Below, piece by piece: positions 10,347-23,500 of a stretch of 64,000 bases of DNA (positions are counted from its first letter, which is position 1; each line of letters opens with the position of its first letter). Both the position numbers and the translations under genes were made by a program. The notes under the pieces were generated by a model. That model had not been told where the DNA came from. It worked only from the letters and a program-made list of their open reading frames with translations, and searched no databases. Source of the stretch: Macrostomum lignano (lineage: Eukaryota). The stretch lies in NCBI GenBank assembly GCA_002269645.1, contig NIVC01000020.1:1-64000 (forward strand), written 5' to 3'.

Positions 10347-10478
10347 CAAAGATAATGAAAGATTGATTGATTTAAATAAATCTCAATCTCAACCAAAGAC
10401 TGGTGATTAATTGAGTGATACTCAGTCAATCAGTCAATCAGTCAATCAGTCAATCAGTCAATCAGTCAATCAGTCAAT
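10347..10478 (+). repeat. Left copy of inverted repeat IR1 (~75-bp unique part plus CAGTCAAT tandem)
   Basis: Its reverse complement aligns with ~17170-17255, with tandem 8-mers on the inner side in both copies. Confidence 0.8.
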
Positions 10479-10663
10479 CTAGGTAATGCACAAATTAAGA
10501 CAATCGACTGCGATTTACAGGATAGCATAGAAATTTCAATAAGTGATTGCTTAATTTATTTCAGTCAGAGAGGTAGGGCAAGGCAAGGTAAGGTAATGAA
10601 CTTTTTAAATATTAAAAAGCAGGGAACGGCGTTTGAAAATATTTAAACGCCGGAACTATTCAC

Positions 10664-11001
10664 CAAATTTAGCATTAATAATTTATGCCGCTTAGAATCA
10701 GCTGTTCCAGAATCAGTGCTGATCAGTGCGAAGAAATCATTTACCAATTTCACATGGATCTAGGTGGAAGCGACTTTTAGTTCACGCTAGCCAGCGGCTG
10801 TAAAATGTTTTATCTAATGCTGCCTACTGAGCGAAACATCCGCGCATATGAGCACTGGCAAGCTGCCGACTCGGATACTTTCCTGGACGAAACAGCAACA
10901 GGCCCAGTCTACCGTGTTGTGCTGCAGCCAAGAGACACATTGCTGGTGCCAGCAGGGTGGATCCATGCAGTCTTCACCCCCGAGGACTCAGTGGCATTTG
11001 G
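10664..11001 (+). pseudogene. JmjC histone demethylase fragment (KDM2/KDM7-like), copy 1, 5' part
   Basis: SFTNFHMDLGGSDF*..LPTERNIRAYEHW..LLVPAGWIHAVFTPEDSVAF. Near-identical to 18416-18755. Confidence 0.85.
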
Positions 11002-11374
11002 TAGAGTATCATCAATCAGCCTTACCGCACGCTACTTACTATTTAAATTTTTTAGAAAATTTACTAAATTTCTTACTAATTTTTCTACCAAGTAGCCAGC
11101 AGTTCCTGTGCATAATAAACACGCTTGAAAAAGAGATTAGAAGGCAAAAACTGCGACACGAATTTCACGGTCTTCTATTATGAAAATTAATTCATACTAG
11201 ATAAATTGATAATTACATGTAAAAGAGCAGCGCGTATTTTTAATACATGTATAAAAATGTAGAATTACACAGGCAGTAAACAGCTAAAAATATGATGCGT
11301 AATAAGTTAGATTGATAAAATAATTAAAGCGAAATAATAATAATAAGTAAGTGATTCAAACAAGCAAACCCTAG

Positions 11375-11590
11375 ACCTAGTAGTCCCTGGCGTTCTTGAT
11401 TGCCTCTTGAAATTGACAAGTCCAACGGAGAAGCATCACTGGCGCCAGGCGGATCGCTTGCTTCCTCGAGATCGGCCCAAATTTGCTCCCGTTGACATCT
11501 TCTCCCTGTAAGCTGTCGGGCTAGGGTAGATCGGGCTTTGGCTTGTAGGACCACGGTATAGTACAAAATTTCGAATCTTGTTTTCGGGTG
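11375..11590 (-). repeat. IR2 segment, copy 1; open frame containing PLDLS
   Basis: About 210 bp, highly similar in inverted orientation to 15790-16000. Confidence 0.85.
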
Positions 11591-11641
11591 TGAGATTGAT
11601 AATTAATTATTGCCTTTTGGCTGACTTCTAAGCGAGACATT

Positions 11642-19344: not shown

Positions 19345-19649
19345 GCTATAACTATAGATATAAGCTACAACTATAACTATAGATTTAGGCTACAACTATA
19401 AGCTATAATTGATAGATTATAGTTGCTATAATTGTTATACTTGGATATAGTTGTTATAGTTGTTGTTATAGTTGTTATAATTTTTATTGTTTTACAGTTA
19501 ATAGTTCTTTATAGTTATACAATTATTGTTAGTTTGTTACAGGAACAAAAAGGAACACTAAGTTTCGTTAACTTAATAAGGTGATCAATGTCATGATTCA
19601 TCACCAGGATTTGGCCGGATAATGATTTTATCTGTAGCTAACCTATTCC

Positions 19650-19767
19650 GAATTAGGAACCCTCTCACCCAATTGATGTAGTCTGATGTAGACTGATCCT
19701 GCGTCTCCTACGTCTCCTGCGGCTGCTCGCGCTCGGCCGGTTGTAGCGCCTGCTGCTGCTGCTGCTG
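19650..19767 (-). pseudogene. Inverted 3' fragment of the zinc-finger/polyQ gene
   Basis: Reverse complement matches ~17760-17921 (QQQALQPAERE..QPQET and 3' flank). Confidence 0.85.
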
Positions 19768-22700
19768 TTGTTGTTGTTGTTTAAGCTGACAAATCCGGGG
19801 GCGGTTCTCCCGGCCACTCCACCACCACCACCGGCCGCAACCCCTGGAGCCACCTCCAGAACTCCAACGGCCGCGCCGTGGTGTCCGTAAGGCTACTGAC
19901 GCCCTCAATCCCGTACCGCCTTCTACCTCTCGCAAGCGCCAAACAGTTGCATATGTGCTCCACCGTCTCCACCTCCTCCTCGCACGCCCTGCACGCCGCA
20001 CTGCCGTCATTGCCCAGCTTGGCTCGGTAACCAGCCAGGTCCAGCGAGTGACCCGTCCGGAAACGCCTGAAGCGAACGGCCTCCTCCCTGCTGCGAAACG
20101 GTAGCTCCGGCGGCTTCCTGCCCTTAGCACCGTAGGTCGCTTTGCTCCGGTCATGCTTCCACTCCTCCTGCCTTCGCAGCCACTGACTGAGCTCACGCGC
20201 CACCGTACTGGAGAGGACTCCAACACCGCCTTGGTCTAATTGCGTCGCCTCGCCTGCCACCTTGTCCGCCGCTTCATTCCCCCACAAGCCGCTATGTCCC
20301 GCCACCCAACCCAGCTGCACCTCAATGCCCGTCTCTCCCAGCCTCTCCAGCCTGCAACGGGCCTCCGCGGCCAGCGGGTTCTTGCCACTCCTCGCAATGG
20401 CTGCCAGCCCGCTTTGGCTGTCGCTGATCATCACAGCCGCCTGCCCGTCCCGCAACTCCTCCTCCATCCACCTCAATCCCAGCAGAATGGCCCTGAGCTC
20501 CGCCTGCGTGGATGAGCAAGGTGAGCCCGCCGGCGCTCTCAGCTCGGCTAGCACCGTCCGCTTGCCCTCCCGGTCATTGTCGCTCGGAGCGCACACCACC
20601 GCTCCCGCCCCTCCTTTGCCGTTTTTCACAGACCCATCGGTGTAGATGATGCAGTCTGGCCTCCTCTGCTCCATCAGCAGTCCAATTCTTTCCAGCGCCT
20701 TCCTCTTGTCTTCCTCCGCCACTCCCTCTCTCTTCCCGAGTGCCTTCACCACTGCCTCCTGGCCTCTTCTCCACGGCTTCTCCAGCGGTCGTTCCTCCAA
20801 CGGCGCTACCACCATACTCGCCCTAACAAGCAGCTCCTCCGCCTGACTCCGCCAGCCCCGCCTCGACAGTCGCTGCCTGGGTCGAGAGTCGGCCAGACGC
20901 CGTCTGCTGTCCTCCGTCTTGTGCCTGCGCCATCGATCCAGCTTTGCCGCCCAGCGCGCCTGACATATCTGACGCACGGGCACCAGTCCGCTCTCCGCTT
21001 GCAGGGCCTCGACCGGGGTAGTAGCCACCGCTCCCGTCATAATCCTCGCCGCGCACCTCTGCAAAACCTCCAGCCGCTGCCAGTCCACGTTCGCGAGCCA
21101 GGGCGTCCAGGCAGGAGCACCGTACAGTAGCCGGCTCTGCATCAAGGCCACATAGGTCTGCCTGCCCAGCTTCAGGTCCCAGCCCCAGCTGCTGCTCGAC
21201 ACCCGCCGAAGTAGCGCCAGCTTCTTCCTACCTTCCGCGATGACTCCGTTCAAGTGCATCTTGAACGTGAGTCGCCTGTCGTAGGTGAGGCCAAGGAACC
21301 GTGGCTCACGGCACCACGTCAGCGGTCTGCCTCCCAGGCGCACATCATGCTCTAGCGGCTCGACTTCTTGCTTTTGGGTGCTGAAGCAGGTCAGGGAACA
21401 CTTGCCCACCGAGAGAGGCAGCAGCCACCTGTCGCTCCAGCTTTCCACCTGCGCCGCCGCTTCCGCCTGGACCTCCATCAGCCGCTCCATCTTGTTGCCG
21501 CTAGTCCACGTCGCCAAATCGTCCGCGAACCCACTCAGCCGAAGGCCCTCGATCTCTTGCAGCTCTTTCAACAGGTCATTGATGAAGACGATGAAGAGCA
21601 GCGGTGATAAGACCGAGCCTTGGGGGAGCCCTTGCCTGAACACCTCGCTTCTACCGTCCACACCCCCAACGCAGACCTTAGCCAGCCGGTTGCACAGCCA
21701 ACTACGGATCCAGCGGATAATAGTGCCACACACGCCGGCTTCCAGCAGCTTCATCATGAGCCCCACACGCCAGACCTTGTTGAAGGCGCGCTGGAAGTCA
21801 AAAAGCGCCAGCAGACACTGGTCTTTCCTCTGGAAGGCGTCGTCAACTTCCTGCGTCAGCCTGAGCAGCTGATCCTCACAGCTCCTGCCAGCCCGGAAGC
21901 CAGCCTGTGCATCGCAGAAGAAGCCATCGCGCTCCAGCTTGAATCGGATGCGGCTGGCGATGACCCGCTCCATCCACTTGCACAACCCAGCCGTCAGGCT
22001 GACCGGTCTGTAGGATCCTAGATGTCTAGGGTCCTTCTGCGCCTTTAGCAGCGGGATGATGCGCGCCGTTCTCCAGACTTGTGGCGTCTCACCTTCCTTC
22101 AACGACCTGTTGAAAAGCCCCAGCACCGCACGCACGGCCTCGCCAGGGAGAGCCTTCAGCAGTTTGGGGTGCACACGGTCTGGCCCTGCCGCCTTTGACC
22201 CGTCGATCTCCTCCCTCGCGCGCAGCAGCTCCTCCATCGTGATCGTTTTACCATCCTCCGCCTCAGGTCCTACCTCTCTCAGTCTCTTGTTAACCACCTC
22301 GCTCAACTTTTTGTGCTCCCTCGGGATATCGACCTTGCTCACCCCCGCATACTCCTTCACAAAGGCGTTAGCCTTGCTCCGATCCGACAGGCAAACACGT
22401 CCCTGGTGTTCAAGGGCTACATCGCTACGTCCACCGCTTCTGCTGCCACCCAACCGCCTCAGCAGGTCCCACATCTTGCCATAAGACGCATGCTTCTCAA
22501 CCGCCTTCTGCCACTCCTCCGATTTCTTCTCTCTGATGGTCTGCACCAACTCTTCGCTTTTGGTTCTCCAGCTGCCCTCTCCATCCTCCTCGGCGCTCGC
22601 TTCCTGCCTCTCCGCGTCCCTGGCTTCCATCTCCGCCTTGACTTCATCGTCCACCTCCACCTTCAGGTTCCTCGTGCTTCTCACCCTCGTGCCAACCTTC

Positions 22701-23192
22701 CTCCTCGCCGCCGAAATGATCGCCGTGCTCAGCTTTGCTTCTGCCTCGGTGAACGATCCCTGGTTAGGGTCAAAGTCCCGCAGACCCACGCACACCTCCT
22801 CCGCAAACCCATCCCAGTCCGCCTCTCTCCAGTTCCACGAGATGAACTTCCGGCTTTTAACGGTCGGCGCCACCCCTCCCCGCTCCACGATGATAGGCCT
22901 GTGGTCCGATCCCAGCCCCGCGATCACTCGCCAGCTCCACTCCGCCTCTTGCACCTCGCCCACGGCAGTGACATCCGGCGCCGAGTCGCTGCTGCCCGCC
23001 CTGCCATCCCTCGTCTTGTCTCCATTGTTCAGCACCGCCATGCGCCTATCCGCCAGCCAGTCGGCCAAGATCTCGCCCCTGTGATCACCTTCCATGGAAT
23101 TATCCCAGAGTTCGTTGTGCGCGTTGAGATCGCCCGCTATCAACCATTCCTTGCCAGTCGGTATCTGGCTCAGGGCGGCTGCCGTCACCTTT
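19768..23192 (-). mobile_element. 5'-truncated I-group non-LTR retrotransposon (APE-RT-RNase H-Cys/His), intact 1135-aa frame
   Basis: AGDLNAH/SDH endonuclease remnant, PQGSVLSP and FADD RT motifs, YTDGS RNase H, C-term CRAC..HICNC. (AAC)n tail directly after the stop. (CTG)6 on both flanks. Confidence 0.95.
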
Positions 23193-23224
23193 CTGCTGCT
23201 GCTGCTGCTGTAGGATTGTTAAAC

Positions 23225-23500
23225 TTTTTAATTACCGGCAATAAGGGAAAGGGGGCGTTCGCCTCCTGATCTCTCCGACGTGACGAATTTATATGCTAGC
23301 GAGCCAACGTGATTTACCAGCGCGTTGAGCATTATCAACAGTGTGGTCTCGACACTTGTTTTGTGTTAGAGTTTGTTAACAACTCGAAGAACTATGCCAT
23401 TGACGCGCAGCACACCCAGCGACTCGGCCGCTTCCTAAACCATTCAAGGAAAAGTCCGAATTGTGTTGCCAAAATTATTTCAGTGCCTGTGGCCGACAAA
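23225..23500 (+). pseudogene. SET-domain (SETD8-like) copy 2, truncated by a LINE
   Basis: TGNKGKGAFAS*..YAIDAQHTQRLGRFLNHSRKSPNCVAKIISVPVADK, homologous to copy 1. Confidence 0.85.

Follow-up and report, generated by a model that had tools for sequence, protein, structure and literature searches.

Do the enzymes that write and erase histone marks travel through an animal genome together, as the cargo of one mobile element? The question is raised by positions 10347-23500 of a 64,000-nucleotide stretch of DNA from the flatworm Macrostomum lignano (contig NIVC01000020.1, assembly GCA_002269645.1; the whole stretch is called the window here), in which pieces of a JmjC demethylase gene, a SET methyltransferase gene and a zinc-finger (ZnF) gene recur in mixed orientation. 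A preliminary description made from the sequence had read this interval as a mobile, amplified module of chromatin modifiers, possibly belonging to a large transposon or virus. We find that the interval is not one repeated working chromatin toolkit. Probably it is a repeat-rich intergenic tract of nested, decayed mobile and duplicated DNA, whose components are pseudogene pieces with separate histories, none of them functional.

Repeated components of the interval

Self-alignment of the window defines its repeats nearly to the base. The JmjC pieces align in direct orientation, 10663-11001 with 18416-18756 (95.6% identity, E = 2e-155) and 16747-16848 with 19027-19128 (93%). The SET pieces align in inverted orientation, 15063-15332 with the reverse complement of 23255-23503 (73-80%), as do the two copies of a segment named PLDLS in the preliminary description, 11381-11586 with the reverse complement of 15791-15996 (97.6%). 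With E-values of 1e-33 to 1e-155, the window repeats lie far beyond chance. A tblastn search over all 64 kb with the same pieces recovers two copies each of SET (65% amino-acid identity), JmjC, ZnF (35-40% amino-acid identity, E from 1e-5 to 7e-9) and PLDLS, and no further copy of any of them in the rest of the 64 kb.

Repetition within 13 kb is thereby borne out for JmjC, SET and two zinc-finger pieces, while two other members of the original component list have to be struck off. A supposed third zinc finger at 19650-19767 is the 3' untranslated region (UTR) of RT1, a retrotransposon described below, and directly follows the stop codon of its 1135-residue open reading frame (ORF). The PLDLS segment is the inner part of the inverted arms of a unit that we call E2; nothing marks it as coding, and a Pfam scan of its ORF gives no match.

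Order, divergence and selection of the copies

The remaining pieces form two clusters, A and B, listed here by position.

10663-16848, plus strand: JmjC copy 1, a KDM2/7-class fragment from mid-domain to the stop codon, split
11913-13628, plus strand: ZnF-A, a small gene with CxxC...H...H finger motifs
14943-15353, minus strand: SET copy 1 (SET1), a SET8/KMT5A-class SET domain to its C-terminal end and stop codon
17346-17724, plus strand: ZnF-B, open for about 125 codons that start at an ATG and span both finger motifs; the ORF continues to 17876
18416-19128, plus strand: JmjC copy 2, a contiguous 713-bp unit with a Jumonji helical domain and its own stop codon
23213-23503, plus strand: SET copy 2 (SET2), an older paralogue of SET1 with 65% amino-acid identity

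Copies of an amplified cassette should agree in divergence, in order and in orientation, and these agree in none of the three. Cluster A reads JmjC (plus, split), ZnF-A (plus) and SET1 (minus), and cluster B reads ZnF-B (plus), JmjC (plus) and SET2 (plus). Between copies, JmjC has diverged by 4% and SET by 20-27% at the DNA level, and ZnF by 60% at the protein level; the mode of selection differs too, with neutral drift in JmjC and purifying selection in SET. The cassette reading therefore fails, and the proposal that a single JmjC-SET-ZnF module was amplified finds no support, since ages, selection modes, order and orientation all disagree between the clusters. What survives of a mobile module is its transposon-like surroundings and the presence of ZnF-A and SET1 in one inverted-repeat-bounded unit. 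The copies are indeed broken, as had been noted: every JmjC, SET and ZnF copy is truncated or interrupted, so that no working toolkit exists here today. Searches of 5.8 to 15 billion proteins reveal no close relative of any piece.

A dead JmjC fragment, recently copied

The JmjC pieces are of the KDM2/7 class, in agreement with the first assignment: their matches in the PDB are ceKDM7A (1.2e-21), KDM7A (2e-16), KDM2A (5e-16) and PHF8 (3e-15), and the C-terminal piece, taken from copy 2, matches KDM2A (residues 278-337, 3e-12) and PHF8 (7e-12). The metal ligands HxD...H are present as read and are followed by the Jumonji helical domain. The Pfam JmjC profile PF02373 scores 22.2 bits, just below its cut-off of 24, and covers only profile positions 60-109 of 114; the best database matches, which carry PF17811/PF02373, are 50-56% identical in the conserved core only. 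A homologue search with the C-terminal piece yields nothing beyond KDM2/7 fragments of exon size; these come from unrelated animals and lack a family-specific tail.

Both copies are truncated at the identical 5' base, about 25 residues ahead of the HxD motif, and the N-terminal half of the fold is therefore missing. The pieces had been described as catalytic domains without PHD or CXXC modules; six-frame Pfam scans bear out the lack of PHD and CXXC, and detect no F-box either. It is the completeness of the domain that does not hold. The truncation point lies 33 bp upstream of a splice-acceptor-like site, and the 3' end of the unit lies just past the stop codon. Copy 1 is broken by one in-frame stop, one frameshift and a 5.7-kb interruption that contains E2, and has lost 270 bp relative to copy 2. 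Copy 2 has the in-frame stop in common with copy 1, and one frameshift, other than that of copy 1.

The two copies differ at about 4% of bases, with about 3 synonymous against 11-13 non-synonymous codon changes over 115 codons, which together with the common stop codon points to a dead fragment that was copied and then drifted neutrally. We conclude that the 713-bp JmjC fragment was already dead and was copied recently; without half of its fold, it was no working 'eraser' when copied.

Copy 2 also contains an internal repeat, in that a 41-bp stretch of C-terminal coding sequence (18925-18965) recurs with 80% identity at 19083-19123, 158 bp downstream and just beyond the stop codon. The tail of copy 1 holds this stretch as well (16803-16843), and the 41-bp internal duplication is older than the copying of the JmjC unit.

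Two old SET8-class lineages

The assignment of the SET pieces as SETD8-like is upheld. The minus-strand frame of SET1 scores 53.7 bits against Pfam PF00856 (cut-off 22.4), and its best structural matches by phmmer against the PDB are SET8/KMT5A chains (3e-14 to 1e-12), with 4ldg, a SET8-type protein of Cryptosporidium, at 2.9e-14 and human KMT5A/SETD8 at 6e-14; other SET classes (KMT2, EZH2, NSD) follow at 1e-10 or weaker. The alignment reaches the last residues of the KMT5A chain, with the stop codon next, leaving the short C-terminal flank of the SET8 type. Among 1.84 billion cluster representatives searched with HMMER, the nearest relatives are set-1/KMT5A/SETD8 proteins of flatworms, leech and corals at 35-44% identity, and a word-indexed search of 5.8 billion proteins finds no SET homologue.

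SET1 contains one in-frame stop and no frameshift, and has neither a start codon nor an N-terminal region. SET2 contains two in-frame stops and a 7-codon in-frame deletion relative to copy 1; it abuts RT1 on its 5' side, and its 3' third is missing where it meets a second retroelement, RT2. Over 87 codons, SET1 and SET2 are separated by a synonymous divergence (dS) of 0.89, with a ratio of non-synonymous to synonymous divergence (dN/dS) of 0.24. They stem from two lineages that kept their function, under purifying selection, through most of the time since they separated. No SET or JmjC copy in the interval is able to encode an active enzyme.

The sequence upstream of SET1 occurs a second time in the window.

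15351-15675, minus strand: SET1 upstream sequence, repeated at 33451-33777 with 88% identity in the same orientation

The distant copy comprises these 325 bp and about 7 SET codons but not the SET domain itself; we count it as a third SET-bearing unit, in truncated form. No coding constraint is seen across the repeat (9 synonymous to 20 non-synonymous changes, with a stop in common), which gives no support to an N-terminal SET extension encoded upstream of SET1. A tyrosine recombinase, sought downstream of SET1 and near SET2, is represented only by a sub-threshold DUF3504 relic on the opposite strand, 3.9 kb from SET2 (27359-27550, minus strand; 22-23 bits against a cut-off of 29.7), a domain that we take to be derived from Crypton-type tyrosine recombinases and that draws attention because a recombinase-type domain occurs in long SET8-like genes of Hydractinia.

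At one position of the conserved C-terminal ELLxDY motif, SET1 and 4ldg share a Phe, in contrast to the Tyr of human KMT5A. This is the Phe/Tyr switch, which affects the number of methyl groups added by SET8, and the functional SET ancestors may accordingly not have been strict monomethylases.

A more ancient zinc-finger pair

ZnF-A and ZnF-B are 40% identical in both halves and keep two CxxC...H...H motifs, with no match at the DNA level; this pair is older than the SET pair. ZnF-A has one interruption of about 1.3 kb and a premature stop, and lacks about 25 codons, among them those of the second-finger histidines; Rfam and tRNA scans yield no explanation of the short-interspersed-element type for the GC-rich insert in this gene. 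The Q-rich C-terminus of ZnF-B is a 5'-truncated copy of the RT1 3' UTR tail, and the point of replacement is where similarity to ZnF-A stops. The ZnF ORFs have no Pfam match; ZnF-B has no homologue among 5.8 billion proteins in a word-indexed search and no PDB match at E<=10, and its AlphaFold model is unusable (pLDDT 44.6).

Nested inverted-repeat units in cluster A

Cluster A is enclosed by two nested units, E1 and E2.

10348-17256, no strand assigned: E1, a 6.9-kb inverted-repeat-bounded unit with arms at 10348-10478 and 17129-17256, holding JmjC copy 1
11177-16746, no strand assigned: E2, a 5.6-kb inverted-arm unit nested in E1, with arms at 11177-11586 and 15791-16744
11641-11830, no strand assigned: a 31-bp tandem array of 5.6 copies, ATTGG-rich, separating the E2 left arm from the start codon of ZnF-A

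In each arm of E1, 72 nt of unique terminal sequence give way to an 8-bp (TCAGTCAA)n satellite, which on the right continues over 16965-17187; aligned locally, the unique termini score 103, compared with 20 +/- 3 for shuffled sequences. The arms of E2 measure about 410 and about 950 bp, with ~590 bp of additional sequence in the right one, part of which is a 28-bp tandem array (16155-16387). Their outer parts align with a score of 109, compared with 38 +/- 6 for shuffles, and their inner part, the former PLDLS segment, spans 206 bp at 97.6% identity. The cargo of E2 is ZnF-A (plus) and SET1 (minus) in convergent orientation, within a symmetrical layout of left arm, 31-bp array, ZnF-A, SET1, SET1 upstream region, CGACGTT repeats and right arm.

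E2 accounts for most of the 5.7 kb that split JmjC copy 1. Its right end falls exactly where JmjC homology resumes, and its left end is located only to about 5-20 bp. Six-frame Pfam scans of 10.3-19.8 kb (plus) and 11.0-17.3 kb (minus) reveal no transposase or recombinase, and SET is the only match within E2.

Retroelements and a mariner remnant in cluster B

Four further features break up the second cluster.

17725-17921, plus strand: 5'-truncated copy of the RT1 3' UTR, with 39-bp repeats and a unique 3' end
18036-18425, plus strand: mariner/Mos1-type transposase remnant, N-terminal helix-turn-helix (HTH) only, abutting the left edge of JmjC copy 2
19654-23212, minus strand: RT1, a retrotransposon without long terminal repeats (non-LTR), 5'-truncated, 63% guanine plus cytosine (G+C), with its 3' UTR at 19654-19780
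23504-25437, plus strand: RT2, a non-LTR reverse-transcriptase remnant different from RT1, spread over at least three frames

The resulting order is ZnF-B, RT1 tail, mariner HTH, JmjC copy 2, 0.5 kb of unassigned sequence, RT1, SET2 and RT2. The mariner remnant matches HTH_48 at 26.1 bits (cut-off 24.1) and also HTH_32 and HTH_29, with no DDE catalytic domain in any plus-strand frame and no terminal inverted repeats around the remnant and JmjC copy 2. RT1 retains one open frame of 1135 residues (19781-23188, minus strand) encoding a partial AP-endonuclease, a reverse transcriptase and an RNase H (Pfam RVT_1, 2.7e-32; Exo_endo_phos_2 from profile position 31; RNase_H), and its 5' junction is placed only to about 20 bp. 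The RT1 3' UTR and the ZnF-B tail end at the same base, and the tail aligns with the sequence right after the RT1 stop codon, which identifies 19650-19767 as a retrotransposon 3' UTR. The RVT_1 match of RT2 (4.2e-25) covers residues 164-368 of a 375-residue ORF (23309-24436), in which RT2 lies, by chance, in frame with the SET2 piece that it truncates.

Competing explanations of the locus

These analyses establish the repeats and their boundaries, the domain classes of the pieces, the breaks in them, and their differing ages and selection regimes. As a nest of decayed mobile and duplicated DNA, the interval could have formed as follows. From a KDM2/7-class JmjC gene, a 713-bp 3' piece that already contained a stop codon would have been copied recently, and one copy would have come to lie inside the foldback-like, 6.9-kb E1. 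That copy would then have been disrupted by E2, carrying a ZnF and SET8-class gene pair. With no transposase inside, E2 would be a non-autonomous DNA element or a captured gene pair. The older ZnF/SET paralogue pair beside JmjC copy 2 would have been cut up by the mariner element, the retrotransposon tail and two non-LTR insertions. Sharp JmjC repeat boundaries, identical in both copies, support this account, as do the position of RT1 and RT2 on either side of SET2 and the nested inverted repeats with their subterminal tandem arrays. We infer the mobility of E1 and E2, and the order of events, from this arrangement.

Several observations weigh against this account. E1 is flanked by 'CTAT' on both sides, a possible 4-bp target-site duplication but offset by one base, and E2 only by 'TA', neither of which makes a clear case. 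Each unit is available in one copy, its termini being repeated neither in the window nor in our sample of the host genome, two 20-kb loci on contigs NIVC01000694.1 and NIVC01001366.1 that reach as far as window position 34.5 kb. Along the E2 arms, identity is 97.6% in the inner 206 bp and about 65-75% in the outer parts, which is not expected from a single old insertion and hints at gene conversion or a later event. Nor does E2 cleanly replace the 270 bp missing from JmjC copy 1, as 175 bp of unrelated DNA intervene on the left; comparison rules out that these 175 bp are a diverged remnant of the missing JmjC sequence, and a 'GKNC' resemblance to the JmjC tail over about 33 bp (score 31, shuffled maximum 28) is treated as uninformative. 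Lastly, ZnF and SET paralogues lie close together twice, beyond chance for unrelated low-copy genes, which leaves room for a real ZnF+SET unit.

Part of this evidence would also fit local rearrangement, in which pseudogenes of multi-copy host families (SET8-like, ZnF and one KDM2/7-like gene) were shuffled by deletions and by tandem and inverted segmental duplications in a heterochromatin-like region. We consider such shuffling unlikely, and give an equally modest chance to the associated view that the inverted repeats are by-products of inverted duplication and not transposon ends. Target-site duplications are unconvincing, a transposase is absent, identity is uneven along the E2 arms, and unrelated sequences of the window are duplicated too (a three-copy ORF family, 38369-38586 with 45615-45845, and the SET-upstream piece at 33.4 kb). 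However, the interior of E1 is not mirrored, both parts of JmjC copy 1 are collinear with copy 2, the right end of E2 coincides with the restart of JmjC homology, and both units show a unique terminus and subterminal tandem repeats, as is typical of foldback-type and other DNA transposons. An error of assembly, in which a highly repetitive and partly polyploid genome caused reads to be mis-joined or collapsed, is highly improbable. Perfect 14-bp and 3-bp arrays lie nearby, and an identity of 91-98%, not 100%, to two contigs over 21 kb implies several near-identical versions that could be confused; yet the copies differ by 2-27% with private indels, unlike duplicated reads, the junctions make biological sense (a retrotransposon 3' end, inverted-repeat termini), and the nesting agrees on both sides of each unit.

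The proximity of ZnF and SET bears on a further explanation, that the interval holds wrecks of mobile elements whose cargo was a SET8-like gene and a ZnF gene, perhaps with JmjC. We regard this as distinctly improbable, and see as little chance that intact members elsewhere would modify chromatin at their own copies. The pair is adjacent twice, in one case with the genes facing inward from the arms and tandem repeats upstream, and purifying selection on the SET paralogues means that functional parents existed; a weak relic of the Crypton-type domain DUF3504 lies at 27.4 kb, and the top two HMMER matches are multi-SET gene models (8 SET stretches in the sea cucumber Holothuria, 5 in the seadragon Phyllopteryx). 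In Hydractinia, Hydra and sea urchin, SET8-like genes have multiplied to dozens of divergent members (PMC10368294), and DNA transposons carrying TET/JBP dioxygenases are documented in fungi (PMC12730594). Set against these points, the orientation of the pair differs between the clusters (convergent versus tandem), and the JmjC duplication, recent and neutral, is an event apart from the divergence of ZnF and SET. SET ends at the canonical KMT5A end and is not of the type with an N-terminal SET plus recombinase, and the E2 interior has no transposase or recombinase. Among the 1.84 billion cluster representatives no protein exceeds 44% identity to the SET piece, and the word-indexed search lacks SET and ZnF relatives although Macrostomum gene models were included. 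A nest of decayed elements and duplicates remains our preferred reading.

Genomic surroundings

The window is very repeat-dense, with 33 tandem arrays, and its G+C content is 36% at the left and reaches about 60% in the right-hand third, where the genes lie. Clean arrays include 26 perfect copies of a 14-bp unit at 9778-10141 and 213 copies of TAC at 28527-29165. Wudarski et al. 2017 are said to have put repeats at about three-quarters of the M. lignano genome. Rfam and tRNA scans give no match. To the left of the interval lies a virus-like gene set.

135-7928, minus strand: Maverick/Polinton-like, virus-like gene set, running off the left end of the window, 36% G+C, frames mostly open
6570-7928, minus strand: rve integrase with an N-terminal phospholipase-A2-like domain, part of this set
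4441-5712, minus strand: double-jelly-roll capsid-like protein, part of this set
3556-4328, minus strand: poxvirus-A32-type packaging ATPase, as two overlapping ORFs split by one frame change
135-1043, minus strand: ORF with an F5/8-type-C (discoidin) domain, part of this set, which has several unnamed ORFs besides

The last recognisable gene of this set ends at 7928, 2.4 kb left of the interval, and it is to this extent that the suggested origin from a large transposon or virus finds a counterpart in the window. No polymerase belonging to the set occurs inside the window, and an IMG/VR scan finds no relatives of the capsid-like protein.

To the right, host genes occupy 43843-63963, at 55-62% G+C.

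43843-44283: Sedlin/TRAPPC2L-like gene, single exon
within 43843-63963: biotin carboxylase, biotinyl-domain end, a host gene
within 43843-63963: FYVE and ANCHR-type B-box protein, a single 384-residue ORF
within 43843-63963: GH38 alpha-mannosidase, long exons, with introns packed with 22-, 53- and 34-bp minisatellites

The 146-residue Sedlin ORF is encoded exactly on NIVC01000694.1 and NIVC01001366.1 of GCA_002269645.1, and window positions 34.5-55.5 kb are collinear with both contigs over 21 kb at 91-98% identity, so that the window is a further haplotype, homeologue or assembly of M. lignano or a close relative; the two 20-kb loci contain no match to window positions 9-26 kb. The series NIVC00000000 is the Mlig_3_7 assembly of Macrostomum lignano (PMC5730564). 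Between the propionyl-CoA-carboxylase-like gene and the FYVE/B-box gene, a 32-bp unit is repeated 85 times (51248-53960, 2.7 kb), a copy number unlike that in public M. lignano contigs.

An unnamed ORF family occurs three times on the plus strand (27813-28079, 29774-30691 and 33997-34647; 33-43% identical, one a broken remnant). Its members have a Gly/Ala-rich hydrophobic stretch between coiled-coil-like segments and no Pfam match, and their three copies indicate that local duplication of unrelated genes is common in the window; 38369-38586 and 45615-45845 form a further local repeat. Exact-protein look-ups with ZnF-B, the JmjC ORF, the FYVE ORF, the capsid-like ORF and an unnamed 305-residue ORF return no identical record.

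Comparison with known systems

The region behaves like known cases of gene pieces in non-autonomous DNA elements and like ordinary transposon graveyards, and with no transposase it fails the test of an autonomous transposon. A close parallel is the transduplication of Pack-MULE and other Pack-type elements: E1 and E2 are likewise bounded by inverted repeats, free of transposase and filled with pieces of cellular-type genes, and the captured JmjC piece starts in intron-like sequence, is non-functional and evolves neutrally. Unlike Pack-type elements, E1 and E2 have neither a convincing target-site duplication nor a second copy in the sequence sampled, and the genes of E2 resemble small whole genes with their own upstream regions, not random fragments. 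Internally deleted elements with filler DNA belong to the same class of comparison.

With KDM2 (FBXL10/11) and KDM7 (KDM7A, PHF8, PHF2) the JmjC pieces have in common the JmjC core with HxD...H and the Jumonji helical domain. They differ in representing only the C-terminal half of the fold, without PHD, CXXC, F-box or LRR; in a frame that ends about 60 residues past the helical domain and contains a stop and frameshifts; and in an identity to database proteins of at most about 56-66%, in the core only. The primate SET-mariner fusion SETMAR offers a likeness in that a mariner remnant here abuts a chromatin-modifier fragment, but only the HTH is present, it lies beside JmjC and not SET, the frames are unjoined and both are dead, so that this is juxtaposition and no fusion gene. 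The locus carries a caution: chromatin-modifier domains in mixed orientation can arise by nested insertion and the copying of dead fragments, and dating the components separately exposes false cassettes.

The remaining interest lies in SET8-class domains of at least two old, selected lineages, each beside a member of an otherwise unknown zinc-finger family, with one pair framed by inverted repeats. KMT5A/SETD8-like genes number 65 in Hydractinia, 24 in Hydra and 61 in sea urchin, where the authors treat them as host paralogues (PMC10368294), and several of the long SET8-like members carry a tyrosine-recombinase-type DNA_BRE_C domain (PMC10368294, S8 Table), a combination that in our view suggests mobile elements. 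The window resembles the expansions in Hydractinia, Hydra and Strongylocentrotus in having divergent SET8-class domains beyond a canonical gene, here three pieces from at least two lineages in 64 kb. Most of the published genes, however, have an N-terminal SET and long extensions, whereas the pieces here have a canonical C-terminus and no recombinase, and are dead. Together with those expansions, they raise the question of whether lineage-specific 'KMT5A-like' families are carried by mobile elements. It is a long shot that E2 is a worn copy of an undescribed flatworm inverted-repeat DNA element, with genes for a SET8-like methyltransferase and a two-finger DNA-binding protein, and part of a wider and as yet unrecognised pattern among animals (hydrozoans, echinoderms, perhaps fish), with mobile elements rather than host paralogy behind the expanded 'KMT5A-like' genes. 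Our literature search found no description of a transposon with SET8 plus JmjC. The TET/JBP transposons of fungi (PMC12730594) provide a precedent for a transposon with an enzyme that acts on silencing marks; theirs recurs in many copies beside an identifiable transposase, whereas no transposase is present here. If the 'KMT5A-like' families do prove to be element-borne, a histone methyltransferase would join the short list of transposon-borne epigenetic enzymes.

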